DNA from: Macrostomum lignano
Taxonomy: Eukaryota
Assembly (NCBI GenBank): GCA_002269645.1
Contig: NIVC01000001.1
Location: 434,001-498,000, forward strand
Reading direction: 5' to 3'
DNA: 64,000 nt
The translations under genes and the position numbers were made by a program. Positions 8,586 to 54,917 of the stretch are shown in pieces (position 1 is the first letter of the stretch; the number at the start of each line of letters is the position of its first letter). The notes below the pieces were generated by a model. That model had not been told where the DNA came from, did not search any database, and saw only the letters and a list, made by a program, of their open reading frames with translations.

Positions 8586-10044
8586 ATGATGATGAGCACG
8601 TCAACCTGCTGCAGAAGCCTGCGACGCCGGTTAAAACTGCGCAACTTCCTCGGTTGCATTGGCCTTCTGGCCATAGCAACTACCCTCTACCGTCACTTCG
8701 CCGTGGCCCCCGAAAAGTTTACTATGCAGCTCACTGAGCCAGACAGCTACCAAGTAAAAGGAGATTCAGTTAAAAAAATAAACAGAATTCCGGCAATCCT
8801 TCATCAGACCTGGATATCCGACATCATTCCTAGCACCTACGTGCCCTACGTGCGCAGCTGGGCGAATCACAGGCCCCGCCTTGACTATTACTATTGGACC
8901 GACGCCAACTCGCTTGAGTTCGTGGCGCGCCACTATCCGGAGATTCTGGCCACTTTCCGAGGTTACCCAGCTCACCTGAGTCGGGCGGACGCTGTCAGGT
9001 ACATGCTGCTGCACAAATATGGCGGCATCTATGCCGATATGGACATGATGCGGCTGAGAGACCTGGCCCCGCTGCTTAACAATAGCAGGGAGTTGTGCTA
9101 CCTCAGCCAGGAACGCTACGAGATCACGCGGCTCTACTGGGGATACAACAGGTAGGTTTTGAATTGGCTAAGCTTTAATAGACAGTCTTGAGGACAAATG
9201 CTATTATAGCGAACTGATACACTGATAAACAAAAACCGATATGCAATTTGAGTTGAGTTTTTAATTTACTCTGTCACTTAGACAACGCTTCTCAATCTGT
9301 ATACTTCCAATGACCAATGCACAACATAAGAAACAACTTTTAAATGTATGAAAATCGCAAGAAGTCATATCGGTTTTGTTGAAATAGACTGGGAAGCGGT
9401 GTTAGCATTTTGCTAGTGTTGTGGAGTAATCCAACGGATGCTCTTGAACTGACTGCCCAAAATCTGCATCCACGGAGAGCCGATTCGTCCTCCAGGGGTT
9501 GACATTTACGAAATTCAGATTTGGCATTAGCTTGTCTTCGTTCTGACACACCAACAGCAGCGTCATGAACGCCATAATGCTAAGCGCGCCGGGCCACAAG
9601 TTCATGGAGTACGTTGTCAAGGCTCTGCCAAGATTCGCCAACAACTCCCCGGACGTCATGACCTCGACGGGGCCGTTATTTCTGCAGAGAGTCTACGAAG
9701 AGTTCCATTACCGATCGCCCGTTTGCGACCTGCGTGACCCGATGTGCCGCTGCGTGGCTGCCGACCCCTACGACTTCATGCCGCAGGTGGACCCGATCCG
9801 AATCCCGCTGTTCCGCGGCAAGTGCTCCTCGCCCAACCAGCTGAAACCCAACGCTGTGGAGGCCTGCCGGATGCTGGACCGAATAGGATGGCGCAACGAG
9901 ATCTCAGAGATCGGCACCAGGTCCTACACGCACCACGGATTTCTGCACTACGGCTTCGAGAACCAGCGGTTGAAGTTCGCCTCGGTGGCCAACATTAGCA
10001 GCGTCCGCGCAGACAAGCTCAGCTTCGGCCGGGAGATTCATTGA
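8586..10044 (+). CDS. GT32 / DXD-motif glycosyltransferase (Gly_transf_sug; SUR1/OCH1-like), type II membrane protein
   Basis: Exon 8586-9151 and exon about 9558-10044, phase compatible. N-terminal TM anchor; motifs IPAILHQTW, RADAVRYMLLHKYGGIYADMD, NAIMLSAPGHKF, STGP. Confidence 0.88.
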
Positions 10045-12786: not shown

Positions 12787-15312
12787 TTATCGGTGCTTAG
12801 CCTGATGAGCCAGCTGTTGCTGCTTAACAATGGCCGAGGCGGACAACTGCGGATTCGAGCCCAGGACTACCGGAGCAGCCAACTGTTGCTGCAACAAACT
12901 CTGTTGATTCAGATGATGCTGATGCTGCATCAGAGAGTGATGATGAGGCTGCCTCTGCTGCTGCTGGGGAAGCTGGGCCTGCATAGCGGCCCGGTGCTGG
13001 GCCAGCCGAGCCCGGCAGTGAGCGCCGATGCCGGACATCGGGGCCAGGGTGCGCCTGCGGGCCCAGCCCAACAGGGCCAGGCCGCTACCAGCGCCGCCAT
13101 CAGCTGTAGAGCAGCCTGCCGCAGAGGTCGCAGCCGAGGCAGCCCGACCGCCGCCCCGTCGAATCAGCAGAAGAGGCTGCGGCGCGCCGAGGCAGCGAAA
13201 CTGAGCGCCAGCGACGGCCTCCACAGGCTGCTGCTGGTCGGTGGGCAGCGGCACCGGAGTGGGCGCGGGCGTGGGGAATTCCAAGAAATCCTCGTCAGAC
13301 GAGTACGCCTCCGGATTAGCCGGGGGAGGCGGCGATGAGGAGGAGGAAGCGGCGGACGAGCACAGGGCGGTGGCAGTGGGGATGAGCACAACTGGCTGTT
13401 GCCGGAAGAACATCTGCAGCGCTGGCTGTGTTTGCTGGTGCTGGTGGTTCAGCAGCTGCGGCGAGCTGCTCACGGCTGGCAGCGGGCCCACGGCTGCCGA
13501 CACCGGCGCGCCGGGTGGAGCCACGGGGGGCGGCTGTCCGGATTTGAGGCTCCGGCTGGCCTGCAGCAGGGCATCGAACGGGCGGGTCCTGCCGGGCACA
13601 GCGCGCCGGTCTCGCAGGCTGTGCTTCTTGCAGGTCAGGGAGCGGACGCAGCGCTGGCCGGAGTCGGTGACTACGCCGCAGTGATTGTCCGGGTCAAAGG
13701 CGCGATCTCGGAGCGGCAGGATGCGCGTTTTGGTGCCGCCGCCTTGCCCGCTGTTGCTGCTGGTGTGGCTGTGCTGATGCATCAGCGGCTGGCTTGAGGC
13801 CACGCCGCCAAGAGGCGACATCGCCACGGCGGTTGTGGGTGTCGCCGCACCGCCTTGCTGACCGTGGCGATGTTGCTGATAGCCAGATGAAGCCGAACTC
13901 ACCAGCGCAGCGGCGCCAGCGGCAACGGCCGATGCGGATTCGTCCTCTTCGCGGATTCGAACCACCGGAACTGCATCCTCTTCCGGTTCGAGCGATACGC
14001 TGACGGGAGCCTCCTCGAGCAGGCCAGGCAGCCGCGGGGTCTAACAGAGAGCGGGAGGGCGATTCTTTAAACTGGACTGTAGGGCGATTCTTTAAACTGG
14101 ACTGTAGGGCGATTCTTTAAACTGGACTGTGGGCGATTCTTTAAACTGGACTGTGGGCGATTCTTTAAACTGGACTGTAGGGCGATTCTTTAAACTGGAC
14201 TGTAGGGCGATTCTTTAAACTGGACTGTGGGCGATTCTTTAAACTGGACTGTGGGCGATTCTTTAAACTGGACTGTGGGCGATTCTTTAAACTGGACTGT
14301 AGGGCGATTCTTTAAACTGGACTGTAGGGCGATTCTTTAAACTGGACTGTGGGCGATTCTTTAAACTGGACTGTGGGCGATTCTTTAAACTGGACTGTAG
14401 GGCGATTCTTTAAACTGGACTGTAGGGCGATTCTTTAAACTGGACTGCAGGGCGATTCTTTAAACTGGACTGCAGGGCGATTCTTTAAACTGGACTGTAG
14501 GGCGATTCTTTAAACTGGACTGTGGGCGATTCTTTCCAAACTTTAATCAAAGAGATTTTCCGAGCCAGTTAAGGACCAGGTGAGTTGTATGAGAGTCGGG
14601 AGACAATTGAGCTGCACAACAGCCAGCTCGATACACAGGACAGGTAAGACAGGAAAGCAACCTGGGAGTCCTCCGCAGCCATCGGGCTGGCCCCGATTCC
14701 TCCGCTGCTGCTGCCGCGCCCGTTGCCAACCTCAGCATCTTCATCATCGTCCGCCGCCTCCTCGTCATCCTCGGCCACCTCCGCGTCTTCCTGCTCGTCA
14801 TCTTCATCTTCGACTGCGGTTGTCGCCGACGCCACGGAAGTTGGCGCCGTGGTGCCGCCCTGCAGAGCGGAGGCCGAGTGGCCAGCGGCAGCGCCGCCAG
14901 CCCTGCTAGGAGTCGATGGCGGACTCGTCAGCATCAGCGGCGAAGTTGACAGAAGCGCCGCCTGGGTCAGCGTGGGCGAATCTGCCATCATGGCAGCTGC
15001 CGCCGCCGCGGCTGCTGCAGCAGTGGCGTCGCGTTTCCCGCGGACTTTCCTTCGGCCTTTGCTGTGCGCGCTGTCTAGGTGCCTGAGCAGGGTGATGAGG
15101 CTGGGGAATCTCAGCGAGCATAGGCGACAATCGTGAGCAACAAAATCTCTGCTCAAAGGAGTCTGGCTGAGCAGTGGCATCAGGTCTGACTGGAGCAGCG
15201 GCACGTCTGGACTGCTGGGCTCCGGGTTGGATGGGCATCGAAGCTGGCCACTGCGCTGGGCTTGGCCAATGGCCGACACCTCGCCCTGGAGCCAGCTGCT
15301 CCAGTCTGCCAT
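12787..15312 (-). CDS. ATXN7: Ataxin-7-like protein (SCA7 domain; SAGA deubiquitinase module subunit)
   Basis: Exons 15312-14662 (C2H2 finger CRLC..HLDSAH, acidic tract) and 14040-12787, phase 0. SCA7 signature FDPDNHCGVV..QRCVRSLTCKKHSLRDRRAVPGRTRPFDALL. The symbol is family-level (ATXN7/ATXN7L). Confidence 0.85.
14057..14535. repeat. 24/25-bp tandem repeat (GGGCGATTCTTTAAACTGGACTGT[A]) filling most of the ATXN7-like intron
   Basis: Visible directly; about 19 copies by length. Confidence 0.95.
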
Positions 15313-23585: not shown

Positions 23586-25757
23586 ATGGCTAACGAAATG
23601 CAGTCTTCAGCTGACCAAGAAGAATTTAATGAAGAGAAGCAACTTCCCGCAACTGCCATGACTGTCGTTAGTGGCAATCGTCACCTGTTATACTTTTGTC
23701 ACCTGTGCAGCTTTGCTGGTGAGATTTGGTTAGATTTGGTTAGGTATCCGAAATCACATTTCTAATAAATCACAGTTTCTCGACCATTTTTTCTCTGTAT
23801 TCCAGTGGGCTAGTGGTCTTTAGCCACCAGAAATATCTGCAACATAGTTCTGTACAATTGCAGATGTATGTCTTTGTCTGCACAACTGTGTTGTCACCAC
23901 AGATACTAGAATAACTAGATAGGCCACTCAGGCATATATAACTTAGTAAAACAGCTTTCTACTTTCAGTTCAGTAGCAAAGAAGAATACATAAGCTATTT
24001 TATAAAATAAAGGTGGCTGAAATGACTTTGGTAAGTTTAGAAGCCCAAGCTTGCAGTAAACAACTTGCTAATTGGTTCAGCAGTAATGTACATTGGCCAG
24101 TCCACTGAAATGTACATGGCAGCTTTAGGCTGGAATTCCAAAAAAAACAATAAAAATTGGCGCGGGGTGGGGGTAGTGTGGAAAGGCGCGGGTGGAGGGT
24201 TTAAGCTGGGGGATAAGAGCTATTAGCTATTAGCTATTGAGTCAAGCGTATTAGCATTTATTTTCTGTTTGTATAATTTCTCGGCTCTCCATAGCAAACA
24301 TTGCAAGAAGCGAAGCACCGGTCTAGGTGGGAACAGAATACATTTAAACAAAACACTTCAATCTAGGAGACTGGTCTCATCTTGAAGGAAATTTCAATTC
24401 GCTAATTGCCTGGTTGAATTCTGTTTTTGCCAATTTTTATTTAATGAAAAGCAGAAATACTGCTCTGTCTTGTGCGGCAAAATTAGCAGCAGAATTTTCC
24501 TTTCGACGACTGTTTTAACTGATACAGTATTTGTCTTAAAGTAAAAAATAGCCATTTTTCTGCAACAAAAAACCCTTTCCTCACTCATTGGTGCCCGCAG
24601 GAGAGGCGCACAATGCAAAACTAAACAGAAGTAGATCCGCTTTGTTTCAATCCATTTATCATGATTGCACAACGCTTTCCTCTAGAGCTCACTCAACTCA
24701 AAGCAGTCACGTGGTTCGATCTCAGCTGCTCCACACGTCTTTCCAACCCTGCCATCACACGTTCAAACGCAGCATTTAACACCTCCTTTACCTCCCAGGC
24801 GCCACTCAGGAGGCCTTCAAGGAGCACATGGCCACTCACTACGAGTTCCAATGCCCGGCGTGTGACTACAAATCGCGCACGGACGGCCGGCTGAAGCGCC
24901 ACCTAAAGGACTTCCACTCGGAGGTGCCACCGGACAGTTACTCGGGCAAGGCTGCGCCGTCTCGCCAGAAGCTCCACCGCTGCCGCCAGTGCAGCTTCGT
25001 GACGGACGACAGGTCTGAGTTCTGGCAGCACTCGCGCAGTCACATCAAGTCGGAGAGGCAGCTCGAATGCCCCAGCTGCCCGTTCGTCACCGAGTACAAG
25101 CATCACCTCGAGTATCACATCCGCAATCACCTGGGCTCAAAGCCATTCAAATGTCCGAAGTGCAACTACCAGTGCGTGAATCGGTCTATGCTGAATTCGC
25201 ACATGAAGTCGCACACGAACGTGTACCAGTACCGCTGCCTGCACTGCAGCTACGCCACCAAGTACTGCCACTCCCTCAAGCAGCACCTGCGCCGTTTCGG
25301 ACACCGTCCGGCAGCTGTGCTGAATGCCGATGGCAGTCTGCCGAAACCCGGAGCCCAGAGCCACTCTGCATCGGCCAGGAGGATCCAACAGCCACAGCCA
25401 CCTCCACCGCCGCCACCTCAAGCACCGCCTCCGCCACTGCTGCCGCCGCCACCGCCGCTGCCGCCGCTGTGCCCGCCGCCGCCGTTGCCATTCCTCGGGC
25501 CGATCCTGCCTTTGCATGTGCCGCTGGATTTGACCGCAAAGCCGCCAGGAGGAGGCGGCGATAGTCACAGTCAGCCTTCGATAGTTCAACGCTGCGAGTG
25601 CCATTTCTGCGGCATCGCGTTCAATGAGCCGCTGATGTTCGACCTGCACATGGGCTACCACGGCTTTGAGAACCCATTCAAATGCAACCGCTGCGGCTGC
25701 GAGGCCCGCGACCGACTGGAGTTTTTTGTGCACCTGGTGAGCAGCGCCCACTGCTGA
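23586..25757 (+). CDS. hb: Hunchback zinc-finger transcription factor, 8 C2H2 fingers (2+4+2)
   Basis: Exon about 23586-23718 ([10 protein letters not shown]) splices in phase to 24799-25757 ([13 protein letters not shown]), completing finger 1. Diagnostic central fingers [43 protein letters not shown] and a C-terminal [13 protein letters not shown] pair. An acceptor at 23554 suggests a possible further 5' exon. Confidence 0.95.
23900..24215 (+). mobile_element. Truncated copy of the CAGATACTAG-TIR MITE, in the hunchback intron
   Basis: Homologous, in inverted orientation, to 63510-63825. Confidence 0.75.
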
Positions 25758-28592: not shown

Positions 28593-30288
28593 TTACCGTC
28601 GCGTTCCTCGACGGGTGTTTACAAGCACCTCTTTTCCACGCTTCTCCGTGTGAATCGCTATGGGCGGCAGCGTTTTCGTGCGATTCAACATTCTGTGAGG
28701 CGCCTGCGAGAGGGAAGCAGAATTTGCTTCAGTTGACAGAGGTCGAGCACCCGAATTGGGATTCTTGGAGGGTTGCTCGCTTGCTCGTGGTCTATAAGTG
28801 AGTGGCTGAATCCCTCTGACACTCTGTTTGGGCAAATCCATGGTCTCCGTGTACGTGCCTCTCGAACCCGGGGGTGATAGAGACGATAAAATTGGTTGAA
28901 TCACCGGAGGGTCTTTCGGGCGAGCATTGCCCGTCTGGTTCAAGTGGTGTCCGAGTAACGCTCTTCGACTGCCCTCAGAGGGAGCGACCCCCCTTCGCGG
29001 TGTAAACGCGGCGCTAAGTAGGGGCTGCGACGGATCGTTTGCTGCTCCTTGCTGCTGCCGCTGCTGCTGCTGTTGCTGCCGCTGCTGCTGCTGCCGCTGA
29101 AAGTACTCGATTGCGTCTGCACTTGGTCCATCAGTGGCCACATGCGGTGCCTGAAATGCGGTTTGAGCTCCAAGCTCGCCGGCATTCCGCAGATGACTCC
29201 TTGCTGTCCTACCTGTTTGTCGCTGGTCTTGCGTTAATCTTTCGATTCGCTGACGCTCCCTTTCAAACTCGACCTGCTGCGTATCGAGCTGCCTTTGATG
29301 CCTCTCCATTTGAAGTTGCCGTTCAAGATTCTGAACTCGCTCCTCTAGCTGCCTCTCTCGAACTGTAGGGGGAGCTCTTCTGTCGAATGTAGAATGGAAT
29401 CATTTAGGTGAAATTACAAGTGGCTTAGTCTGCAAGAATGCTCGTCGACTATTTGTACTGTATAAGTTTAAATCAGATTGCATCGACCAGACCATATTTG
29501 CGAACATCGTCCTACATCTAAAGTACATCTAATGCATCACATTTTTTCGCTCACATCGGCTCCAGAGGTGGCAACTCAAAAGTTGACACATTTTGTATTC
29601 GGTTTCTCCTCGTCCTGTCAGCGCGAGGTGAACCCTCTAGTGGTTTGAGCAGACGGGAAATTCTTTTATTTAAGTCAGTAGCCAGTTTTGCAACAAACGC
29701 CTCGCCATCAGCGCACAGCTCCAGGCTCTCCACTGTCGGCTCTACCGGAGCGGCTCTCAGTTCCCGTCCGGCAGTGACGCCCTGTTCCGCTGACCGCTTC
29801 AGCTGCTCCATGTCGTCTGCCCACTGCGCCACAGCTTCGTGATGCCGCTTCAGTGCACCGATTGACGCGTCAAGTCGCTCCCGCTGAGTCGCTACCGCCT
29901 GCTTCATTTTCGACTCGATGACCGACAGGCAGCGCTCGATTTGGTCAGACTTCTCCATGGCTTCTCGGGCCGCATCCTGCGACTGCTGTCGGGTTCTCTG
30001 CAGCTCCTCGATGCTCGGCAGCTGGTTGGAGATCTCTCTGGCTTTAAAAACTCGATTAGCCTCGATCAGCCTGACCATGGACAGACACTGCGGCAGCTGC
30101 TCCGGCCGCACCTGAGTCACATGTCGGCAGGTCGGACATCGAAGAACTCCTTGGTTCTCCAGCAGTCGTTGAAGGCATTCGAGGCAAAATGTATGCTGGC
30201 AGTTTAGCGCTGTTGGCCTTCTCTGCTCCTCGTAACAGATAGGGCAGCTGATGTCAGAGTCAGCGATGATCGAGTTTGGTTCGGTCAT
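28593..30288 (-). CDS. RING-finger (C3HC4) coiled-coil protein, TRIM-like E3 ligase with a Gln-rich C-terminal exon
   Basis: CPICYEEQRRPTALNCQHTFCLECL..CPTCR then coiled coil. Donor AT|gtgagc at 29555 and acceptor gacag|A at 29379 are both phase 2 and join ORF 29551-30288 to ORF 28593-29309. Confidence 0.75.
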
Positions 30289-34817: not shown

Positions 34818-37114
34818 TCATTCCCATGGGGTAACAGCATTCTCAGACTTTTCCCACGGCGTGACAGCATTCTCCGGGTTGTCGGCGGTCTCCCACGGTG
34901 TCACCTGATTATCGGGCGCAGTGACGACTGCTTGGAAAGCAGCACTTGAACTGCCAGCCGCCGCAGACTCCCATGGAGTCACGAGATTCTCTGGAGCATT
35001 AGAGGCCACTGCCGCGCTCTCCCAGGGTGTTACATTATCATCTGGCTGAAGTTCCTGCTTCTGCATCAGATTTTCATGCTGAAGCTTTGAGGATGAAGGA
35101 TTGCTTGGGATTGCGGCCGTTTCCCAGGGAGTCACAGGATTCTCCGGATTGCCCGCCGTCTCCCACGGCGTCACCTGGTTGTCTCCGGCCTCCCAAGGCG
35201 TGACCTCATCGATGGTGCCTCGGTCAGCATAGTTGTAGGAAGTGGAAGCTCCACCACCGTTTTTCAAAATAGAGGCCTGCTGCTGCTGCTGCATCTGCAC
35301 CACAACTACCGGGTTGCTGCGCATCGGCCGGTTGCCGTTGCTGCTGCTGGTCTCCGTGCTGCTCACAGTCTCGGTGCGGTTCTTGCTGCTGGAGCCGCCG
35401 CCTCCTGCCTGCTGCCGCTTGACGAAACTGAAAGCGTGCGCCGCCGCCGCCTTCTTCGTCTTGGCCAGCTGCTGTCCGTGTTTGTCTGCAGACGCCTGCA
35501 GAAGGCATTTGTAGTCCTCGGATCTGAGAAATCTCTGATAGCTGTCCTTCTTCATCAGCATGTAGATGTGCTCCTGCGCCTCCTCGAAGCTGAATCGCCC
35601 GGCTTCCTGCATGCCCCGCTGCGTGGCCGTCATCGTTCTGGAGTCGATGTTGATCTCGGACGGTGCGCCCGAGGCCAGGAACTCGGCGAAGATGCTTTCC
35701 ATGCGAGCGTGCAGCTGGCTGACTGGCCCGAACTTGTAGTCCTGCACGGCCAGCCAGAAGCGCAGGTTCTCCGAGCTGAACTCGCGGGTCAGGAAGTGCC
35801 TGAAGTACTCCCGGCCGGCCGGATCGCGCAGCAGAAAGTCGAAACTGGTGCCCCATAGTTTCACCTGCCTTGGCGTCAGGCCGCTCTCCCCCGTGCCCTG
35901 GCAGGAGTGGAATGCGGCTTGGTCGTCCTGCAGCCAGGGAGATCCGGCTTGCACTGCCGGGGTCCCAGTCTGGTCCTCGCTGCCCGAAGTTCCGGTAGCC
36001 GCAGCAGCAGACGACGCCGCCGCTGCTGCAGCAACTGCTGCCTCAGCGGCAAATGCCGGAGCATTCAAAAACCAGTCGAACGATTTAGTCAACTCGTAGC
36101 AACTCACAATGATGTCCATTGACTTGTGAATAGCCGTCGCGATGTTGTTGGAGGTGCAGTGCGCGCCAGTGCTCTGCAGGGCGGCCTCCTGCTGCTGGAG
36201 CTGCTTCTCCCTGCGCTTTTGCATGTGCTGGTCATGCTGCTGCTGCTGCTGCTCACGCCCGCGGGCCATCCGACGCTGCATCTGGACGTCGTTAAAATGG
36301 CGCTGCAGCGGATGATCGACCGGGTTCATATAGCCGGGAGGCGGGCGGTGCACTCGCCAGTAGGCTCGCTCCTGAGTGGAAAGTTTGAAGCAAACTGATT
36401 GGTCTAAAGGAGAATTATGTACCTGGATTACAAACTTACACCAAACTTGTACAGCATACACTTCAGCTAGCTAAGCCAATATCGAACCGGGCAATTCCAG
36501 ACCCGCATCACCTGCATTTCCAGCACCATTCGGTCGTTCTTCTTTCTCTCCCTGGCCAGTTTGAGTTCCTCCTCGGCCTGCAGCGCAATAAACTGCCACC
36601 GATCTGCCAGCAGCTTCTGCAGTCTGGTCAGTGCCGTCTTCTCGTACTCCTCGAAGCCGCTCTTCTGCTTGCTGCGAATCATTCGCTTTGTCAGGTAGAT
36701 AGCGTAGTCAACGTTGTCCGGCCTACCGGACACGGACAGCCAGAAGTAGGGCGCCTGGAATCGGTACAGGCTGGTCGAATCGTCCTTCACCAGCAGCGAG
36801 TGGCCCTCGGCCAGCGGATAGACATAGCCGTACACAGCTAGGAGGTGGGCAATGTGCGCCGCTTCCTCGGTGGCGTCGCCAGCGGTGGTCAGGCGGTCTC
36901 GAATCCAGCCGATGAGGTCGCTGCCGCTGACTGCGGCCGGCACGGTGGACAGGAACGCCTTCTGAGCTTTGAAGGTGACACCAGTGTCTGGATGTTGCAT
37001 CAGCTCGACAAGGTGCTCGAGTCGGCGCACTACGGACAAGTGTCGATACACGTCAATGGTAGTTAGAGGAGCCTGCTCGTCAAACTCGTTGCCATGGGAA
37101 CCGGACTGTGCCAT
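34818..37114 (-). CDS. R7-family regulator of G-protein signalling (DEP-DHEX-GGL-RGS; RGS6/7/9/11, EGL-10/EAT-16-like) with 8 C-terminal VTPWE motifs
   Basis: Exons 37114-36512 and 36371-34818, phase 0. DEP: VSGSDLIGWI..YRFQAPYFW. DHEX: PDNVDYAIYLTKR..QERAYWRVHRPPPG. GGL remnant: FDWFL..SPWLQDD. RGS: WGTSFDFLLRDPAGREYF..EFSSENLRFW..LMKKDSYQRFLRS. Confidence 0.93.
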
Positions 37115-43200: not shown

Positions 43201-46200
43201 AAAACTTAGTAATAGGGTGTCTATAGCACCTGGGGCCACGTGTTGAAGGTCCAGAAGCTCTCGATCTCGACGGCGACTTAATTCTGTTTTTCAGAAGGTG
43301 CACAACAAAAAAATTAGGTCCATTTTCTTGAGGTTCTCCATTCCTCCTTCTCCTGGTAGTTTTACTGTCAATGCGATGAGTTGCAGTCGGAGGTAAAACA
43401 GGCGTTAATTTACCTTGGAAATCTGTTGAAGCAATTATCAGTTCATTTCTACCCGCGAGTTCACCACCTGGTTCCCAGACTCTGTCTTGTCCGATGAAGA
43501 GCGGAGACTCGCACTTGACGATTGGGGTAAAAGCTATTACATGTAAATCGCATTTTGACGATGAGACCTTGATTAGTTTTTTAAACCCAAACGTTTCCTA
43601 AACTGTTGGTAGAGCTTGTGAAAGTTAAAACTGACAATTTTACTAAAACAACCGCGTGTAATATTCATGGACAACTGGAGTACAAGGACGCTACTATCCT
43701 CTCAAAAAACCCGAGTTTATTGAGAACATCCTTATACTTTAGCTGTCCATGGTAAGATCATGCGCGATTCAATTAACAAAACTCGTGCATTACTCGTATA
43801 GTTTCATCTGCAAACCCCTTTATTACTCGTACTAACCAAGTTTCCTAGAATCGCAAGTCTCCTGTGGTAAAATATGATTGAAAATCAGGATTTATTTAGC
43901 AATAATTAACTATGGTATTTACCATTAACTTACTCCCTGTGCAGCCGTGATGGAGCTACTCGGGTTCAAGCCGAAGACATTTTCTGTGAAAAGCCACCTG
44001 GAGCTGATGAAGCCGTGTATTCAGGTCGAGATGGACCACCCGGACAGGCAGGACAGCGTCACGGAGGTCTTCATCAAAGATTGGAAACTGCAGGCACCGA
44101 TGCTGCTGACGCTGGGCCGCTGCTTTGAGAAGCTTCAGAAGCTGCACAGCATAAAGTAAGCAAGCGGATCATTTTGTGCATGCGGATAGCCAGTCCCAGT
44201 GCAAAGCCAAATGCGTATTTAGCTGAGGGTGTCTGGGGTCCTCACAGCTTTTGAGAAACATGCATGTACTTCCCATGAACATCAGCAAGGAAGCTTCCAG
44301 GCGCGTCGCCACCGGGGGAGGACAGGGGGACATGTCCCCCCCCAGTAGTAAAAGCTCTGGGGGGGACATGACAATGCTTTGTCCCCCCCACCCCACCTTG
44401 TGAGTCGTGGTAATCAATAACTTTTCTTCAGGGCGCCAAAATATAGCGCCATCGGGGCCAAAATGAGTGCCTGCGGCGCCAAAATGAGCGCCTGCGGCGC
44501 CAAAATGAGTGCCTGTGGAGCTAAAATGAGTGCCTGCGGCGCCAAAATGAGTGCCTGTGGAGCTAAAATGAGTGCCTGCGGCGCCAAAATGAGTGCCTGC
44601 GGCGCTGAAATGAGTGCATGCGGCGCTAAAATGAGTGTCTGCGGCGCTAAAATGAGTGCCTGCGGCGCCAAAATGAGTGCCTGCGGCGCTGAAATGAGTG
44701 CCTGCGGCGCTAAAATGAGTACCTGCGGCGCCAAAATGAGTGCCTGCGGCGCTAAAATGAGTGCCTGCGGCGCTAAAATGAGTGCCTGCGGCGCTGAAAT
44801 GAGTGCATGCGGCGCTAAAATGAGTGCCTGCGGCGCTAAAATGAGTGCATGCGGCGCTAAAATGAGTGTCTGCGGCGCCAAAATGAGTGCCTGCGGCGCT
44901 GAAATGAGTGCATGCGGCGCTAAAATGAGTGTCTGCGGCGCCAAAATGAGTGCCTGCGGCGCCAAAATGAGTGCCTGCGGCGCCAAAATGAGTGCCTGCG
45001 GCGCCAAAATGAGTGCCTGCGGCGCTAAAATGAGTGTCTGCGGCGCTAAAATGAGTACCTGCGGCGCCAAAATGAGTGCTTGCGGCGCTAAAATGAGTAC
45101 CTGCGGCGCCAAAATGAGTGCCTGCGGCGCTAAAATGAGTGTCTGCGGCGCTAAAATGAGTACCTGCGGCGCCAAAATGAGTGCTTGCGGCGCTAAAATG
45201 AGTGCATGCGGCGCCAAAATGAGTGCCTGCGGCGCTAAAATGAGTGCCAAAATTTAGTCATGTACATGTTGATTTCTTGGCTTTGTCCCCCCCCCCACTA
45301 TAAAATCCATGGAGACGCCTCTGCTTTAATCGAGCTGTGAAGGCAACTTACTTTCCAAGCTCCCTTGACTATCATCAGCCTTTGGCGAGTGGCGGCCGAT
45401 GCCAGCATTGTTGACACCCTGGCTAAGCTATTGGGACGCCTGCCAGCCCTGCGCTCTCTGTCTCTGGAGTCAAACGGACCCGTGGCAGATGAAGAAGTCT
45501 ACGCGGAGCTGATTCGAGTTGAGAGCAAGTAAGTGCCTGCCAGTTTCCCAAGCAACATACAAGTCTCTACTTTCTCTGTATGACAGTGTTAACCCGCAAA
45601 ATATTCCAACCGCCACAAAGCCTCACAAAGCTGCGTCTGCGCTTCAATCAACTTAGCGACAAGGCCGTCTCAGCGATGGCCATCCAGCTGGACGGGCTGC
45701 GCGAGACGCCGTCGAAGCTGGTGTCACTCGACCTGTCCTCGAACTGCATCGGCGATGCTGGGGTGGATTCGCTGGTTAAGGTACCAGATCCTTTCCCGAC
45801 ATGCCAGATCCTTTCCCGATATGCCAGATCCTTTCCCGATATGCCAGATCCTTTCCCGATATGCCAGATCCTTTCCCGATATGCCAAATCCTTCCCGATA
45901 TGCCAGATCCTTTCCCGATATGCCAGATCCTTTCCCGATATGCCAGATCCTTCCCGATATGCCAGATCCTTTCCCGATATGCCAGATCCTTCCCGATATG
46001 CCAGATCCTTTCCCGCGTTCCCAGCATGCTTAAGCTTAAAGGTGCAAATACTGAAACACCTGTTCACCCATTCCAGTCTCTGCGCACCAACCGGACCCTG
46101 CTGCACCTGTCGCTGAGCAACAACCGCCTGACGGACCGGTCGGCGATCGCCTTGGCCCAGGTGTGTTCCCGGTTCTTCCTCACCCACGAAGAAACTGTGC

Positions 46201-49200
46201 AGCGCCGCCGCCTGATGTCCGTTGACTTCCGCTCCGGCACCAGCGTGAGTTCAGCTGTTAATGAATTGGCGCCTAATAGCGGCGCTGGTAACCATGGAAA
46301 CAACGCTGGTTTAACTGCATCTACAGCTACGCATAACACAAACCATAGTAATAACCATAGCCACAACCACACCGGCGGCACCGCCTCCTCTCATCTGCGT
46401 GTTGTAAGTTCACCGACCTCCCCAGGCTTCTGACAAGTGATTTGTCCGAAACCCCGAAAGACTAGATAAACAAACCAACATTTAAAATAATTTACTGGCC
46501 ACATTGCTAAACCTTTGATTGCTGTTTTGAAACACCCGTTGCTATGGTTTGAACACCCGTTGCTATGGTTTAAACACCCGTTGCTATGGTTTAAACACCC
46601 GTTGCTATGGTTTGAACACCCGTTGCTATGGTTTTAAGACCGTTTCTATGGTTTGAACACCCATTGCTATGGTTATAACACCCGTTGCTATGGTTTGAAG
46701 ACCCGTTGCTATGGTTTAAACACCCGTTGCTATGATTCGAAATCTCGTTGCTACGGTTTGAAGACCCGCTGCTATGGTTTGAACACTCGTTGCTATGGTT
46801 TAAACACCCGTTGCTATAGTTTGAAGACCCGTTGCTGTGGTTTGAACACTCGTTGCTATGGTTTAAACACCCGGTGCTATAGTTTGAAGACCCGTTGCTA
46901 TGGTTTGAGCACCCGTTGCTATGGTTTGAAGACCCATTGCTATGGTTTGAAGACCTGTTGCTATGGTTTAAACACCCGTTGCTATGATTCGAAATCTCGT
47001 TGCTACGGTTTGAAGACCCGTTGCTATGGTTTAAACACCCGGTGCTATAGTTCCATCGCTATCTCTGAGACACATTTGGTTTGATGAAGATTCTTTACCA
47101 TGTGGCTATTGAATTTGAGCAAAGAAACAGGAGCAGTGCTCAAGCCTTGTCGGTTGTGTTTCGGACAAAACTCACTTTTTATTGCGCATTTTCAAAATAG
47201 TTCCGGACGCACCGCCGCCTGCGTGGACCAGTTTTCTCAGGAGTAACTTTTCAAAACAAAAGTAAAAAAATATTTTAATTTAACGCTGATATTTCTGAAG
47301 TTGCCGTCACAGAATATTATTAATAACTTGAATGAATTTTGATTTTCATTAACAAAACTGGTCCACACAGATGCGCCTCTCCGTAACTTTATTAAAACCA
47401 AGTAGCCTAGCAACCAACCCCATCTCTAACCAAATGCCTTTTTCTGCATTGCTTGCTGATTCTCGACAAGCAGGCGGCCACAACCGTAAGTGAAACATGG
47501 AGATTGAATTCGTGAAAAATAATCGTATTTCAATTTGAGTAATTATCTTTCATGACTTCCTTGTGAGCACAACTGACTTGAATAAAATTTGTTTTTCTGC
47601 ACATCGAGTTCTATACTGTATGTGTTGTATCCGTAAGTTTTTTGGGCAACTTTTGCACTAATAGTTCATTTTATGGGCACTAATATGCTTTGTAATTCAT
47701 TCTTCCCTAGAAAATATTCAGTCTAAATGATATGCGAAAAAAATAATTTAATTTTAAACTGTACGAACTGATAGCAACCAACTAATCAGAAACCGCAGCC
47801 AATCAGCTGCCACAACTAATCAAATGTCTCAGCCAACCAGACGCCGCAACCAATCAAATGTCCCAGTCAATCAGACACCACAACCAATCAAATGTCTCAG
47901 CCAATCAGACACCACAACCAATCAAATGTCTCAGCCAATCAGACACCACAATCAATCAAATGTCTCAGCCAATCAGACACCACAACCAATCAAATGTCTC
48001 AGCCAATCAGACGCCACAATCAATCAAATGTCTCTGCCAATCAGACACCGCAACTAATCAAATGTCTCAGCCAATCAGACACCACAACTAGTCAAATGTC
48101 TCAGCCAATCAGACACCAAAACTAATTAAATGTCTCAGCCAATCAGACACCACAACCAATCAATTTTTACAGCCAATCAGACGCCACAACCAATCAAATG
48201 TCTCAGCCAATCAGACGCCACAATCAATCAAATGTCTCAGCCAATCAGACACCACAACCAATCAAATGTCTCAGCCAACCAGACGCCGCAACCAATCAAA
48301 TGTCCCAGTCAATCAGACACCACAACCAATCAAATGTCTCAGCCAACCAGACGCCGCAACCAATCAAATGTCCCAGCCAATCAGACACCACAACCAATCA
48401 AATGACTCAGCCAATCAGACGCCACAATCAATCAGATGTCTCAGCCATTCAGACGCAGCAAACAATCAAATATTTTAACAAAAATAGCCAATGCAGGCTA
48501 ACGAGCAATTGTAAAGCCACCATGTTCAGTTTAGACAAAGCAATAGCCACTTTAACGCTTTTAGAGTATACTGTTTTCATCCAGCCTTAACTCAAATCTG
48601 ATCATAAAATTTTCCTTTCTTTTTTTTCTTCCGCCACAACTTTTAGCCAGACAGGGAGAGCCGTCAGAGTCGCCCAGATTCGTCTCACGCAACGGTACTC
48701 AAGATTTGCTTAGCTTGCCCATCTCTATGCATTCTGTGTGTGTGTGAACTGACGCCAACGGTTATTCGCTCTGCAACAATTAATAACTGATGAATGAGTT
48801 TAATATTTGCATTAATTTTTATTAATTTCTACTTGTATTGAAATGCAGAAGCTCGCATGCAGTGCAGTGTTCTCTAATTAAGCCAAAGCAACCAGCATAT
48901 CGCTCGCAGTATGACTCCAAACTGTCCATGTATTTTTGAAATAGTACTTTTTTGAATCGGTGATGTTGATAAAGCACTTGTTTATCCCTCGGTAATCCTA
49001 AAGATAAGCAAGATTAGCCCTCGGTAATCCTAAAGATAAGGAAGATTAGCCCTCCGTAATCCTAAAGATTAGCAAGATTAGCCCTCGGTAATCCTAAAGA
49101 TTAGCAAGATTAGCCCTCGGTAATCCTAAAGATTAGCAAGATTAGCCCTCGGTAATCCAGAAAATTAGAAAGATTATCCCTCAGTAATCCTAAATATTAG

Positions 49201-52200
49201 CAAGATTAGCCCTCGGTAATCCTAAAGATTAGCAAAATTAGCCCTCGGTAATTTTGCCACACAAGTGAAAATTTTCGTACAGACACCTACTAGAGTACAC
49301 AACCGCTATTTTAAATATTGTCTTGCATGATTAACAACATTTTTTAAGAGTTCTTGCGCTTTTTGCTGTGACTTTGTGCTCCCTTTTGTTTAAATGATTA
49401 AAATAAGATGTTTTACTGTTTGATTTTTAGTTTTAAGCTAAGGTTAAAACACGCGATATTTTGGACATTTTATAAAATTCGCGTCATATTGAGAAGTCTG
49501 CATTTGTTACTATCAGTAGTAGTCTTGAGAAACGCACATTAAAAAGCTGAATAATAAAAACACGCCTTCCCGCAGCCGCCGCCAAGCCGCAAGGGAGCGG
49601 ACAGGCCGGGCAGCGTTCGCAGCATCGACAAAGATAAGGATAAGAAGTCTGCCGCAGCTGCCGCCAAGACTGGCGGCAAAGGGAAAAAGGTGAGCCTTGA
49701 GCTTGTAGGGGAGAAATAGGAGTCAAGTTGGTGATTTTGGTACAAATTTTGGGATATGCAGGTGGGTGAGAGATACAGGTACAAGAGAGGATGAAGTGGT
49801 AAGAATAGGGGTAATAAGAAGCATGCTATGGAGATTGTGTTTTGAAAGGGGAAAGGGTAATGAGAGACAGGGGAGGGGTGGTGAGAGACAAAGGAGAGGG
49901 TGGTGAGAGACAGGGGAGAGGGTGGTGAGAGACAGGGGAGAGGGTGGTGAGGGACAGGGGAGAGGGTGGTGAGGGACAGGGGAGAGGGTGGTGAGAGACA
50001 GGGAGAGGGTGGGGAGAGACAGGGAGAGGGTGGTGAGAGACAGGGGAGAGGGTGGGGAGAGACAGGGAGAGGGTGGTGAGAGACAGGGGAGAGGGTGGTG
50101 AGAGACAGGGGAGAGGGTGGGTAAGAGACAGGGAGAGGGTGGTGAGAGACAGGGGAGAGGGTGGTAAGGGACAGGGGAGAGGGTGGGTAAGAGACAGGGG
50201 AGAGGGTGGGGAGAGACAGGGAGAGGGTGGTGAGAGACAGGGGAGAGGGTGGTGAGAGACAGGGGAGAGGGTGGTGAGAGACAGGGGAGAGGGTGGTGAG
50301 AGACAAAGGAGAGGGTGGTGAGAGACAAAGGAGAGGGTGGTGAGAGACAAAGGAGAGGGTGGTGAGAGACAGGGGAGAGGGTGGTAAGGGACAGGGGAGA
50401 GGGTGGGTAAGAGACAGGGAGAGGGTGGGAAGAGACAGGGGAGAGGGGTGAGAGACAGGGAGAGGGTGGTGAGAGACAGGGGAGAGGGTGGTGAGGGACA
50501 GGGGAGAGGGTGGGGAGAGACAGGGGAGAGGGTGGTAAGGGACAGGGGAGAGGGTGGGTAAGAGACAGGGAGAGGGTGTTGAGGGACAGGGGAGAGGGTG
50601 GTGAGAGACAGGGGAGAGGGTGGTGAGATACAGGGGAGAGGGTGGTGAGAGACAGGGGAGAGAGTGGGTAAGAGACAGGGGAGATGGTGGTGAGGGACAG
50701 GGGAGAGGGTGGGTAAGTGACAGGGAGAGGGTGGGGAGAGACAAAGGAGAGGGTGGGGAGAGACAGGGGAGAGGGTGGTGAGGGACAGGGGAGAGGGTGG
50801 GTAAGAGACAGGGAGAGGGTGGTGAGGGACAGGGGAGAGGGTGGTGAGAGACAGGGGAGAGGGTGGGTAAGAGACAGGGAGAGGGTGGTGAGGGACAGGG
50901 GAGAGGGTGGTGAGAGACAGGGGAGAGGGTGGGGAGAGACAGGGAGAGGGTGGTGAGAGACAGGGGAGAGGGTGGTGAGATACAGGGGAGAGGGTGGTGA
51001 GAGACAGGGAGAGGGTGGTGAGAGACAGGGGAGAGGGTGGTGAGAGACAGGGGAGAGAGTGGGTAAGAGACAGGGGAGATGGTGGTGAGGGACAGGGGAG
51101 AGGGTGGTGAGGGACAGGGGAGAGGGTGGGTAAGAGACAGGGGAGAGGGTGGTGAGGGACAGGGGAGAGGGTGGTGAGAGACAGGGAGAGGGTGGGGAGA
51201 GACAGAGAAGAGGTGGTGAGGGACAGGGGAGAGGGTGGTGAGAGACAGGGGAGAGGGTGGTGAGGGACAGGGGAGAGGGTGGGTAAGAGACAGGGGAGAG
51301 GGTGGTGAGGGACAGGGGAGAGGGTGGTGAGAGACAGGGGAGAGGGTGGTGAGGGACAGGGGAGAGGGTGGGTAAGAGACAGGGGAGAGGGTGTGGAGAG
51401 ACATTAAGAGGAAGTTGACAGGTTGCAAATCAGCAGAGAAAGAAAGGTGGGATGTGAACCGGGAACAAGAAGACAGAAGCCGAAGATGACCCTGCCCTGT
51501 AAAAACTGCTCCTAATAGGACGAGAAGGCCAAACCGGACGATAAAGCAAAGGGAAAAGCGGCATCCAAGGAGGACCCAAAAGCGAAGGGCAAAGGTGAGT
51601 TGAGGCTCAGCCGTTTAGCCTTCAGTGAGTTGGATGGTGAAAACTGGCTCTGACATAATTCCCACAGCTGCTCAGGCCAGCGAGAAGGACGCCAAGGCGG
51701 GCGCCAAGTCCGGCAAAGGTCGCGGCGCCAGGGTCAAGGTGTCAACGCCTCAGCCGGAACCGGAGGTCAGATTGCACTTTAGTATGGAGTTCTTAATTTC
51801 TTAGAACTGCTCTGGTGCTTGTTGGACCGGAGATCGGCGGTCAAGCAAAGTTTCCAACAAGTTTCATATTTTCCTATCTGTTTGTGCAATTCTGTATGAG
51901 CAAAACATTATTTACGAGCCGTATAGCAGAGCGCCACAGAGCAAATCTTTGAGAACTTCTTTCTAATGATATGTGTTTGAAAATGTTTTGATGAACTTGT
52001 GAAACAAACTTTGGAATTTAGAAGCTCAGAAGAAGGTGAGCTACTGTCTGCTAAAAACTGAAAACTAAGAAGGATGGACGCAGGGGGGTCATAGTCTAGT
52101 AGGCTAGCGCGGCGCTCTGGTGTGCCAGCGGCCCAGGCTCGATTCCAAGTGCAGTCACACTAATTTGAGGCTAAATTGGAATCTCGGCTTGGCTCTGCTC

Positions 52201-54917
52201 GTGCAATTAACGACCTTGAGGGTCCCAAGGCACAGTGAAGTGTACATTTCGCTGTGTACACTCCTGTGTAAGTGTGAGCCTGTGCGAATGACTGCGTACG
52301 TATCCGCGCGCTTGTGTGCCTGCTCAGGGGAGTCGGCGGAATGGACATCGCTCAAAGTGCAGTAAGATGCAGACAGCCCTCTGACTCTAATATAAAAAAT
52401 AGATGGATGGACGCTGCCTAGATGTGTCCTATGTCTAACATCTAAGATTCTAACAATGATGCAGTCACGTCCTCAACCCTTCACAGCAAGTCGAGGTCCA
52501 CTTCGACTCGGAGCACCCGCTGCTGGAACGTGCCGACGCCAGCTACGCGCCTGGTCACCTGCTGGTGCCCGGGAACTACGCCCTGGCACTGCTGAACCTG
52601 TCCCGTGAGTTCCAACTGCGAACTTTTCTACATTTAATTGCATTTATTGCTTCTCTGGAATTTTTTTTATTTTTAGCTCGTACAACAGATAGATGAAAAT
52701 TGAAAAATGTTCTTTTCGTAAAAAAATCCTAATACTTGAAATTTATTATTTATATTTTCACCAGGAAAGATGCCGGAATAAGTGACCAGATTATTTCGAT
52801 AACGTAATTCCCAGCTTCCTCCATTCACTGAGCAATCAAAGCTTGCGATATGTTGCGATATTCACTGCTCCAATGTTAACTACGTGTAGCTATTAAAAAA
52901 ATTCAGCGTTTCACATGTGCTGTAACCACGAGGTATCTCAGTAAGGCCTTAAGTGTATTTTCTATCGCTAATAAAAAGTCTCCCACCTCACTCTCGATGG
53001 CAATCTTCAAGATTCGTTCAAATTTACGCCAAAATAAAACAAAGTTAAACAACTTTTCAAACCGTTTAAAAAATATTTCTAAACATTATTTTAAATCAAA
53101 GTTTTAGTTCAAAAAATAACTTCAAGGGTGTTCAAAAGTTTTGTTCACAATGTCTCTTATTGTACTGAACTTATTGTACTTTTGTACTGAACTTATTGTA
53201 CTTTTGTACTGAACTTATTGTACTTATTGTACTGAACTTATTGTACTTTTGTACTGAACTTATTGTACTTTTGTACTGAACTTATTGTACTTATTGTACT
53301 GAACTTATTGTACTTATTGTACTGAACTTATTGTACTGAACTTATTGTACTTATTGTACTGAACTTATTGTACTTATTGTACTGAACTTATTGTACTGAA
53401 CTTATTGTACTTTTGTACTGAACTTATTGTACTTTTGTACTGAACTTATTGTACTTTTGTACTGAACTTATTGTACTTATTGTACTGAACTTATTGTACT
53501 TTTGTACTGAACTTATTGTACTTATTGTACTGAACTTATTGTACTTATTGTACTGAACTTATTGTACTTATTGTACTGAACTTATTGTACTTTTGTACTG
53601 AACTTATTGTACTTATTGTACTGAACTTATTGTACTTTTGTACTGAACTTATTGTACTTTTGTACTGAACTTATTGTACTTATTGTACTGAACTTATTGT
53701 ACTTTTGTACTGAACTTATTGTACTTATTGTACTGAACTTATTGTACTTATTGTACTGAACTTATTGTACTTTTGTACTGAACTTATTGTACTTATTGTA
53801 CTGAACTTATTGTACTTATTGTACTGAACTTATTGTACTTTTGTACTGAACTTATTGTACTTATTGTACTGAACTTATTGTACTTTTGTACTGAACTTAT
53901 TGTACTTTTGTACTGAACTTATTGTACTTATTGTACTGAACTTATTGTACTTATTGTACTGAACTTATTGTACTTTTGTACTGAACTTATTGTACTTTTG
54001 TACTGAAATTATTGTACTTTTGTACTGAACGACTCTTGAATGCTGCCCAAATCAATCAATGTACAATCGTGCACAACTTTTACAAGATCAACAAAAATTT
54101 TATTTTCTTGTTTACTTATTATAACTAAACAATATTGTTAAAGCCGTTGTGACCACTAAACCTCGTAGGCAATCAGATCACGGATCGTGGCGTTGACGAA
54201 TGGAAAACGGCTATTAAATACCAGGCGGCTTACATGGCTAAGCAGAAAGTGCACGGAACTGGCATGCTGAAGCTCATGCTGCAGGTGAGAATTCGGACCC
54301 TGCGCGGTATTTTCCTTTGTCCGTTCGAGAAAAACAGTTAAAAAACACGATTGTTCGGTCCATTATAATACCAACTGTGGTTTGTACCACGGTGTTGCAG
54401 AGTTCAATGAAGAGCCAATCAGAAGGCAGCGAGAGGGAGGAGGGAACAGAGTAAACAGAGATGAGGCCAGATGAACTGAATACGGGCTGGTAGATGACTA
54501 AGACAGATCTGATTTCCTCCATCAAATAGTCTATGTCGAAACCCCATTCAGCACTGTGCGTTCTACGGAGCATACTACATGTACATGAAACTTCGCTCCT
54601 CTACCTCATCTTCTCTTCTCTCCCTTCTCCTCTCCACTCGGCTATATCTCCTTTATTCTCGCCTCCTCTCTCTCCTCTCCTCTGGCCCACAGTCGTGCGC
54701 TGGGTTCTATACGAGCGTGTCTGGCCCTTGAGGTAACAAAGGTTGCCGACCCCTGATGTAAATGCAGTAGTGAAAGAGGCAACTTAGCGTTAGCGTCAGA
54801 TTGTTTATTTTCACGCCGCAGGGAAACCCGTTCTCAACGGAGACGGACAACTACAAAGCATTGGAAGACGCGTTGAATGCTCGAGATCCGCTGAGGCCAG
54901 GGGTTGCCGACAACTGA
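40275..54917 (+). CDS. LRRC71: Leucine-rich repeat-containing protein 71 homolog
   Basis: Phase-consistent exons 40275-40341, 40481-40599, 42920-43010, 43945-44155, 45379-45528, 45621-45780, 46077-46244, (47474-47485), 48647-48694, 49576-49689, 51519-51594, 51668-51765, 52487-52604, 54169-54284, 54822-54917. Motifs TDFAELC, IQVEMD..VTEVFIKDWK, LRTNRTLLHLSLSNNRL..FLTHEETVQRRRL, HPLLE..VPGN..LLNLSRNQIT, RDP match LRRC71 as recalled from memory. Confidence 0.82.
40644..40897 (+). mobile_element. tRNA-derived SINE, family 1 (copy c)
   Basis: GGGGTTGTAGCCCAGTGGCTAGAGCG..GGGGTTCGATTC..TGTGTCCTTGAGCAAGACACTTAAC..CCAGCTGTAAAATGGG. Confidence 0.9.
40930..42768. repeat. 366-bp direct repeat (40930-41295 and 42403-42768) flanking a 1.1-kb GA-rich insert
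   Basis: The two copies are near identical (two substitutions noticed); the interior 41365-42265 is almost pure purine. Confidence 0.9.
44298..45323 (-). mobile_element. Second copy of the 18051-19015 hAT-type family, carrying a 21-bp array (AAAATGAGTGCCTGCGGCGCT)
   Basis: Termini CAGGCGCGTCGCCA / TGGAGACGCCTCTG; shares subterminal blocks (GACATGACAATGCTTTGTCCCCCCCACCCCACC; CCATGGATTTTAT) with the 18-kb copy; TSD not evident. Confidence 0.85.
45784..46022. repeat. 20-bp tandem repeat (CCAGATCCTTTCCCGATATG)
   Basis: Visible directly; starts just after the 5' splice site and fills most of the intron. Confidence 0.95.
46530..47050. repeat. 21-bp tandem repeat (AACACCCGTTGCTATGGTTT[A/G])
   Basis: Visible directly. 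Confidence 0.95.
47199..47388. mobile_element. Small MITE-like inverted-repeat element
   Basis: CTGCGTGGACCAGTTTT pairs with AAAACTGGTCCACACAG; imperfect pairing extends about 35 bp. Confidence 0.45.
47775..48470. repeat. 34-bp tandem repeat built from two 17-bp CCAATCA-containing halves
   Basis: Unit CCAATCAGACACCACAACCAATCAAATGTCTCAG, visible directly. Confidence 0.95.
48984..49251. repeat. 32-bp tandem repeat (GATTAGCCCTCGGTAATCCTAAAGATTAGCAA)
   Basis: Period 32 read from unit starts at 49012, 49044 and 49076. Confidence 0.95.
49860..51400. repeat. About 22-bp purine/G-rich minisatellite (GAGACAGGGGAGAGGGTGGTGA), 1.5 kb
   Basis: Visible directly; generates the spurious 629-aa SPLSL ORF. 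Confidence 0.95.
52082..52404 (+). mobile_element. tRNA-derived SINE, family 2 (copy b)
   Basis: Homologous to 32481-32832; 10-bp TSD GGATGGACGC (52072-52081 and 52405-52414). Confidence 0.9.
53155..54030. repeat. 22/23-bp AT-rich tandem repeat (TGTACTGAACTTATTGTACTT[T/AT])
   Basis: Visible directly; two alternating variants plus a 14-bp short form. Confidence 0.95.
54590..54755 (-). mobile_element. Partial copy (one TIR plus GA-rich tract) of the 6846-7557 hAT MITE family
   Basis: Reverse complement CAGGGGTCGGCAACCTTTGTTACCTCAAGGGCCAGA..CAGCGCACGACTG followed by (GAGGA)n. Confidence 0.7.

Follow-up and report, generated by a model that had tools for sequence, protein, structure and literature searches.

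Eight VTPWE motifs carried by the C-terminal tail of an R7-type RGS protein from the flatworm Macrostomum lignano

In neurons and photoreceptors, the pace of Gi/o signalling is set by R7 RGS proteins, whose way of finding their substrate is known mainly from the vertebrate helpers PDEγ, GPR158 and GPR179 and from the isoform RGS9-2. How should one read an invertebrate R7 protein that carries eight copies of a helper-like motif on its own tail? The gene that raises this question occupies positions 37114..34818 on the minus strand of a 64,000-nucleotide stretch of the Macrostomum lignano genome (GenBank assembly GCA_002269645.1, contig NIVC01000001.1, positions 434,001 to 498,000), referred to here as the window, in whose numbering all coordinates are given. 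Its two exons encode a 718-aa product comprising DEP, DHEX, a divergent GGL region, an RGS domain and a disordered tail in which the pentapeptide VTPWE recurs (Table 1). The eight-copy array is an extreme, Thr-type version of a known element, the PGL motif, in a known family context, and by analogy it probably serves to capture activated Gα.

Anatomy of the tail and its gene

The tail that follows the RGS domain contains eight exact copies of VTPWE, each embedded in [D/N]-x-V-T-P-W-E, with the last copy forming the C-terminus of the protein; a sequence-only reading of this DNA had reported these eight motifs, and every one is present as listed and at the position given. The start-to-start spacing of the motifs is irregular (10, 13, 34, 17, 26, 13 and 10 residues). 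The tail is rich in A, S, T, N, P and Q, and all eight of its Trp residues lie inside motifs. The commonest tail pentamer occurs eight times; when the 218-aa tail was shuffled 20,000 times with its composition preserved, the maximum was four, reached once. In an AlphaFold2 (AF2) monomer model of the exon-2 product, the tail has no secondary structure and a predicted local distance difference test (pLDDT) score of ~36-47, the RGS fold scores >90, and the tail is not docked on the RGS domain at any confidence. Disorder beside a confident fold is the usual setting for short linear motifs. Each motif also contains T-P, the minimal proline-directed kinase site, with its Thr occupying the place of PDEγ Cys68, two positions ahead of the Trp; that phosphorylation at this Thr could switch binding is speculation.

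The codons of the motifs vary at every degenerate residue: V is encoded by GTC, GTG, GTA or GTT, T by ACG, ACT, ACA or ACC, P by CCT, CCG, CCC or CCA, and E by GAG or GAA. Across the 28 pairs of VTPWE codon sets, the proportion of synonymous differences (pS) reaches 0.88 with zero amino-acid changes, and 40 of 40 motif residues are invariant. A gapless repeat search recovered degenerate copies at 60-85% identity, including families of 30-39-nt repeats and one clear 64-nt internal duplication, the two blocks of which share DNQVTPWETA[D/G]NPEN[A/P]VTPWE and differ with a pS of 0.64 and a proportion of non-synonymous differences (pN) of 0.058 (pN/pS ~0.09). The linkers between motifs differ freely in length and sequence. 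Because synonymous sites are close to saturation with zero replacements while the linkers diverge, there is strong evidence that purifying selection acts on the VTPWE pentapeptide, and the tail must therefore be translated.

The sequence-only reading had taken the varied codons to indicate selection on the peptide rather than DNA slippage. The first half of that argument is borne out by the substitution pattern; the second stands insofar as slippage was not recent, and falls insofar as the array did grow by internal DNA duplication, long ago. A recent slippage or minisatellite origin is ruled out by the absence of any DNA tandem repeat detected by Tandem Repeats Finder in the motif region, by the 60-85% identity of the copies and by the saturated synonymous sites, whereas old duplication is accepted; we propose that the array arose via old internal duplications of an ancestral tail with one or two motifs.

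The listing of open reading frames (ORFs) shows a 547-codon frame (34818..36461) after a 215-codon frame (36467..37114), both on the minus strand. Splicing joins ...VLEMQ to ERAYWRVHRPPPGY, a junction that is kept in all homologues in the alignment. The best public match of the spliced product is UniProt A0A1I8GYV1, also from M. lignano, and exon 2 is identical to it apart from a 22-aa gap in the public model. The 22 residues, VSCYELTKSFDWFLNAPAFAAE (aa 291-312; 36039-36104, minus strand), are treated by that model as a 66-nt in-frame intron. They are probably coding, because they are conserved in the paralog P0002 and align with the C-terminal half of the GGL domain.

Membership of the R7 family, as proposed in the sequence-only reading, is upheld. 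Pfam recognizes DEP, DHEX and RGS domains, the best Protein Data Bank (PDB) matches of the RGS domain are RGS7, RGS6 and RGS9, and the top homologues of the protein are all R7 proteins. The Gα-contact and catalytic residues of the RGS domain, E402, N403, N442, D477, S478 and R481, are intact and fall in invariant alignment columns; we take them to be the equivalents of RGS4 E87, N88, N128, D163, S164 and R167. The GGL region is the divergent part: even at E<=10 neither this protein nor P0002 has a Pfam G-gamma (PF00631) match, whereas the controls P0005 and P0022 do. In the alignment, the remnant nevertheless lines up column for column with the R7 homologues' GGL and linker (consensus K.SKA.ES...E.Y.E.DPFL...PSNPWISDD), with FDWFL for DPFL, SPWLQDD for NPWISDD and an interrupting Ala-rich insert of ~40 aa. 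On these sequence features, the protein is best filed as an R7 member with a divergent GGL.

The motif across R7 RGS proteins and their partners

To place the array in its family context, we scanned 120 close homologues together with 150 representatives of the 50%-identity clusters from an exhaustive search, with RGS boundaries set by phmmer. Among 217 R7-like proteins, the 29,833 tail residues that follow the RGS domain contain the pattern [VILMC]xPW[ED] 121 times, whereas the 92,966 residues before the end of that domain do not contain it once. The pattern is carried by 20 of the 89 representatives in which the RGS domain is complete and the tail is 15 aa or longer. The common extended consensus is [ND]-x-[VI]-[C/A/T]-P-W-[E/D], usually at or near the C-terminus, and position 2 of the non-redundant R7-tail motifs is occupied by C (70), A (14) or T (9). 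The replacement of Cys by Thr, which the sequence-only reading had singled out, is thus no peculiarity of this gene, since different phyla have C, A or T there, and the Thr form, found elsewhere as ITPWE in Lytechinus and as VTPWD in one protein from JGI, is uncommon, not unique.

The search of invertebrate R7 orthologs suggested by the same reading finds [VI]-x-P-W-[ED] behind the RGS domain in R7 RGS proteins of echinoderms, brachiopods, molluscs, annelids, nemerteans, nematomorphs and arthropods, at 1 to 7 copies per protein. Single copies are carried by Holothuria (TLIAPWE), Lytechinus (NLITPWE), Lingula (NVVAPWETA), a chiton, several gastropods, Dimorphilus, Lineus, a horseshoe crab and a spider, as well as by the human and primate long isoform of RGS9, which ends ...EKEVICPWESL. 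Multi-copy tails are found in a mayfly and Lepidoptera (two copies), Drosophila and Anopheles (three), Daphnia and the nematomorph Gordionus (four) and the decapods Cherax, Portunus and Procambarus (six or seven); the eight copies of the M. lignano protein are the highest count in the sample. Since cis tails with several motifs are frequent in the public proteomes of invertebrates, and RGS9-2 already presents a PGL motif in cis on an R7 RGS protein, the supposition that the architecture was new has to be given up. We nonetheless found no description of invertebrate R7 PGL tails in the literature searched on these motifs, on PGL with RGS9 and on M. lignano RGS proteins.

The motif is absent from the sampled vertebrate RGS6, RGS7 and short RGS9 forms, Caenorhabditis EGL-10, Trichuris, parasitic flatworms and three sponges, and also from the third M. 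lignano R7 paralog (P0149), so that M. lignano presents a series of eight motifs (the gene studied here), two (P0002) and none (P0149). A close relative, P0072 (run SRR19411413), is likewise without motifs. A word-seeded homologue search with the 147-aa tail returned no match, but it also missed P0001, whose tail is identical, and is uninformative.

Two other tail endings came to light in the scan. The tails of the bivalve R7 paralogs P0156 and P0158 end N-x-[IV]-A-P-L-[AE]-E, the frame of the PWE motif with Leu for Trp. Insect and crustacean R7 tails (P0020, P0022, P0024, P0131, P0142 and others) have the near-invariant end ...[VI]CPWEDEE.CK....PFVKTYATLGYL-COOH, which loosely recalls the PDEγ end VICPWE...ELAQYGII.

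The parallels that the sequence-only reading had drawn with PDEγ (VICPWE), RGS9-2 (EVICPWESL), GPR158 (VCPWE with Gαo) and GPR179 (tandem PGL) are all real. In the sequences that we checked, PDEγ contains VICPWE and human RGS9-2 ends EVICPWESL, the two sharing this hexapeptide. PDB entry 1fqj holds RGS9 together with PDEγ residues 46-87; this structure, by Slep and colleagues (2001), reportedly also includes a Gαt/i1 chimera, with PDEγ Trp70 in the switch II/α3 cleft. The R7 elements listed as having a demonstrated role in regulating Gα recognition include the PGL (PMC7572916, citing Martemyanov et al. 2003), and the extension at the C-terminus of the long RGS9 isoform has been postulated to stand in for PDEγ (PMC5795056). 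In GPR158, two VCPWE motifs govern the interaction with Gαo (reviewed in PMC9027133), and mutating the tandem PGL repeats of GPR179 alters the basal bioluminescence resonance energy transfer signal of Gαo (PMC11437087).

Human RGS9-2 (long RGS9, 674 aa) resembles the M. lignano protein in being an R7 RGS protein with a cis motif at the very C-terminus of a disordered post-RGS tail, but it has one copy instead of eight, Cys instead of Thr at motif position 2 and a canonical GGL, and the M. lignano protein scores nearer RGS7 and RGS6 than RGS9. PDE6 gamma, the affinity adapter of RGS9-1 acting through Trp70, has the same V-x-P-W-E core and works with an R7 RGS protein on an activated Gαi-class subunit; unlike the flatworm tail, it works in trans, being a protein of its own, 87 aa long, with one copy, a helical C-terminal extension and a PDE6-inhibitory end. 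GPR158 and GPR179 share the multiple PWE motifs in a long disordered cytoplasmic tail, work with RGS7-Gβ5 and engage Gαo, and GPR179 provides the known case of PGL motifs in a tandem array; in these vertebrate orphan G-protein-coupled receptors of class C, however, the motifs are of the Cys type and the array sits on a receptor-like anchor, not on the RGS protein. The invertebrate R7 entries with PWE tails agree in domain order and likewise carry the motif behind the RGS domain, in many cases at the protein terminus, but have fewer copies, and those of arthropods use Cys and the conserved ...PFVKTYATLGYL end that is missing from the flatworm.

The closest comparison is the paralog P0002 (BOX15_Mlig015244g1, 610 aa), which is 54% identical to the protein and has the same divergent GGL. 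Its tail contains EVAPWE and then a terminal VTPWEDG, aligned with motifs 1-2, the rest of the tail being unalignable; it differs in having two motifs only and in being intronless. P0002 is encoded identically on four contigs of GCA_002269645.1 (L001-L004, gene at 3001-4833 in each), which fits a recent genome or segmental duplication in M. lignano.

A candidate capture array and its alternatives

On balance, we favour the reading, drawn by analogy, that the tail is a cis array of PGL short linear motifs capturing activated Gαi/o for the adjacent GTPase-activating protein (GAP) domain, and we hold it with moderate confidence. Each motif would place its Trp in the effector cleft of a Gαi/o-class subunit in the GTP-bound state, as in the analogous cases of PDEγ Trp70, the RGS9-2 C-terminus and the GPR158/179 repeats. 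This site adjoins the surface bound by the RGS domain, and the tail, acting in cis as an affinity adapter, would deliver the activated subunit to the GAP domain. Eight sites, each weak and all on one flexible tether, would raise the capture rate and the local concentration without slowing product release. It is from these systems that we infer that Gα is bound, where it is bound and that multivalency brings a kinetic benefit. The reading draws its support from the identity and context of the motif, its family-wide association with R7 tails, the selection on the peptide, the disorder of the tail, the intact RGS residues and the aligned VAPWE and VTPWE of P0002.

Several points weigh against it. 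PDEγ also contacts Gαt through helices after residue 71, which lack a counterpart in the flatworm repeats. Because the GGL is too divergent for detection by Pfam, pairing with Gβ5 is uncertain. The motif is dispensable for basic R7 function, since P0149, EGL-10, parasitic flatworms and vertebrate RGS6/7 do without it, and transcription of the tail is supported solely by the independent public gene model (A0A1I8GYV1). Neither the tail nor profile A1, built from 14 pancrustacean tails, matches any PDB sequence at E<=10, and hhalign of A1 against PDEγ aligns only 13 columns around CPWE, with 59% probability. On these profile tests, a deeper homology of R7 tails with PDEγ was rejected; the likeness is at the level of the motif only.

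The alternative that survives best, though it seems unlikely, is that the VTPWE copies serve to dock a different partner from Gα (candidates being a membrane anchor or receptor, the RGS/DEP/Gβ5 module of the same protein in autoregulation, a TRAF-type P-x-E reader or a Trp-acidic trafficking adaptor), in which case the array would control localisation or stability, not substrate capture. Multi-copy Trp motifs in disordered tails are typical of adaptor-binding arrays, and every motif here has a T-P kinase site. A preprint notes that EVCPWEVTE of GPR179 also fits the TRAF6 motif PxExx[FYWHDE], which three of the eight M. lignano copies fit as well; however, it is only these three, and the fitting residues lie outside the conserved core. 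The protein contains 0 DP[FW], NPF or [LM]xW[DE] motifs and no endocytic or kinesin-type motifs, while docking on its own RGS domain does not appear in the AF2 monomer. Moreover, the motif tracks R7-RGS tails and the R7 partners PDEγ and GPR158/179, all of which are experimentally tied to Gα.

We consider it quite improbable that the tail is missing from the main mature protein through alternative splicing or early polyadenylation, the eight-motif form being a minor isoform or an annotation artefact. R7 genes do use alternative C-termini, as in RGS9-1 versus RGS9-2 (PMC5795056), the tail is documented by gene models, not reads, and the public model already differs by the 66-nt in-frame 'intron'. 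Against this, the RGS domain and the tail share one unbroken exon and frame with the stop codon directly after motif 8, the independent public model retains the full tail, and purifying selection on the peptide requires translation. Least probable of all is a mostly neutral low-complexity expansion, with function confined to a single ancestral C-terminal motif and the other copies carried along as passengers of internal duplication in a repeat-prone genome. In its favour, minisatellites crowd the window, the tail holds the 64-nt duplication and the degenerate 30-39-nt families, and copy number ranges from 0 to 8 between lineages, yet passengers as old as a pS of 0.64-0.88 implies should have decayed, whereas 0 of 40 motif residues have changed and the linkers vary freely.

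The Gα-capture reading has a wider evolutionary form. Because the Trp motif sits on the RGS protein itself across most bilaterian phyla, in one to eight copies, the distribution points to the cis arrangement as the older design. A fuller scenario, which we put forward tentatively and doubt as a whole, would make the PGL element [ND]-x-[VI]-x-P-W-[ED] a cis feature that bilaterian R7 RGS proteins inherited from their ancestor (the three sponge R7 RGS proteins sampled lack it). Parts of the vertebrate system would have lost it or transferred it in trans to PDEγ and GPR158/179, and arthropods, nematomorphs and Macrostomum would have amplified it independently into arrays; the flatworm array would then be a true multivalent Gα-GTP capture device with each Thr-Pro a proline-directed phosphorylation switch. 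If that were true, kinase signalling could tune GAP recruitment copy by copy.

The main value of the locus is comparative, in that it exposes a bilaterian-wide cis PGL tail. The M. lignano paralogs with 0, 2 and 8 motifs form a natural dose series for asking whether multivalency speeds G-protein shut-off, and the animal is transgenic and tractable by RNA interference, making such a test practical. The result would also be relevant to how the motifs of PDEγ and GPR158/179 originated.

Feature coordinates and genomic surroundings

The features of the gene are collected in Table 1, together with the neighbouring ORFs that have Pfam matches, none of which is obviously linked to the RGS gene.

Table 1. 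Features of the R7-type RGS gene and Pfam-matched neighbouring ORFs, in window coordinates
Feature	Position	Strand	Details
Exon 1	36512..37114	-	Codons 1-201, ATG at 37114; N-terminus, DEP, most of DHEX; ORF, GT donor at 36511 and spliced frame verified
Intron	36372..36511	-	140 nt, GTGATG...CACTCAG; canonical, GT at 36511, AG at 36372
Exon 2	34818..36371	-	Codons 202-718 and stop 34818-34820; DHEX end, divergent GGL, RGS, whole tail
DEP	36758..36982	-	aa 45-119; Pfam PF00610, E 1e-09
DHEX	36312..36751	-	aa 122-221, intron-split; Pfam PF18148, E 2.6e-27 on exon 1, continuing into exon 2
Divergent GGL region	35919..36128	-	aa 283-352; KSMDIIVSCYELTKSFDWFL, ~40-aa Ala-rich insert, then SPWLQDD
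RGS domain	35508..35846	-	aa 377-489; Pfam PF00615, E 1.3e-32
Disordered C-terminal tail	34821..35477	-	aa 500-718; AF2 pLDDT ~36-47
Motif 1 DEVTPWE	35190..35210	-	aa 589-595; aligns with GEVAPWE of paralog P0002
Motif 2 NQVTPWE	35160..35180	-	aa 599-605
Motif 3 NPVTPWE	35121..35141	-	aa 612-618
Motif 4 DNVTPWE	35019..35039	-	aa 646-652
Motif 5 NLVTPWE	34968..34988	-	aa 663-669
Motif 6 NQVTPWE	34890..34910	-	aa 689-695
Motif 7 NAVTPWE	34851..34871	-	aa 702-708
Motif 8 NAVTPWE	34821..34841	-	aa 712-718; stop 34818-34820 directly after
Internal duplication, copy A	35120..35183	-	Motifs 2-3, DNQVTPWETAGNPENPVTPWE; family D4
Internal duplication, copy B	34850..34913	-	Motifs 6-7, DNQVTPWETADNPENAVTPWE; family D4; 83% identical to copy A over 64 nt
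Neighbour ORF	1470-2330	-	Pfam: NAGLU fragment
Neighbour ORF	8586-9155	+	Pfam: DXD glycosyltransferase
Neighbour ORF	12787-13965	-	Pfam: SCA7 zinc-binding domain
Neighbour ORF	24828-25757	+	Pfam: C2H2 zinc fingers
Neighbour ORF	29551-30288	-	Pfam: RING finger
Neighbour ORF	45801-46433	+	Pfam: weak leucine-rich repeat (LRR) beside repeat array

Elsewhere in the window lies a 22-nt minisatellite, AGGGGAGAGGGTGGTGAGAGAC, present in ~71 copies at 49847-51403, which gives the 50-52 kb bin an extreme GC skew of 0.68. Many further minisatellite arrays are present, for example at 44453-45248 (21 nt, 38 copies), 53156-54030, 47796-48471 and 14056-14535.

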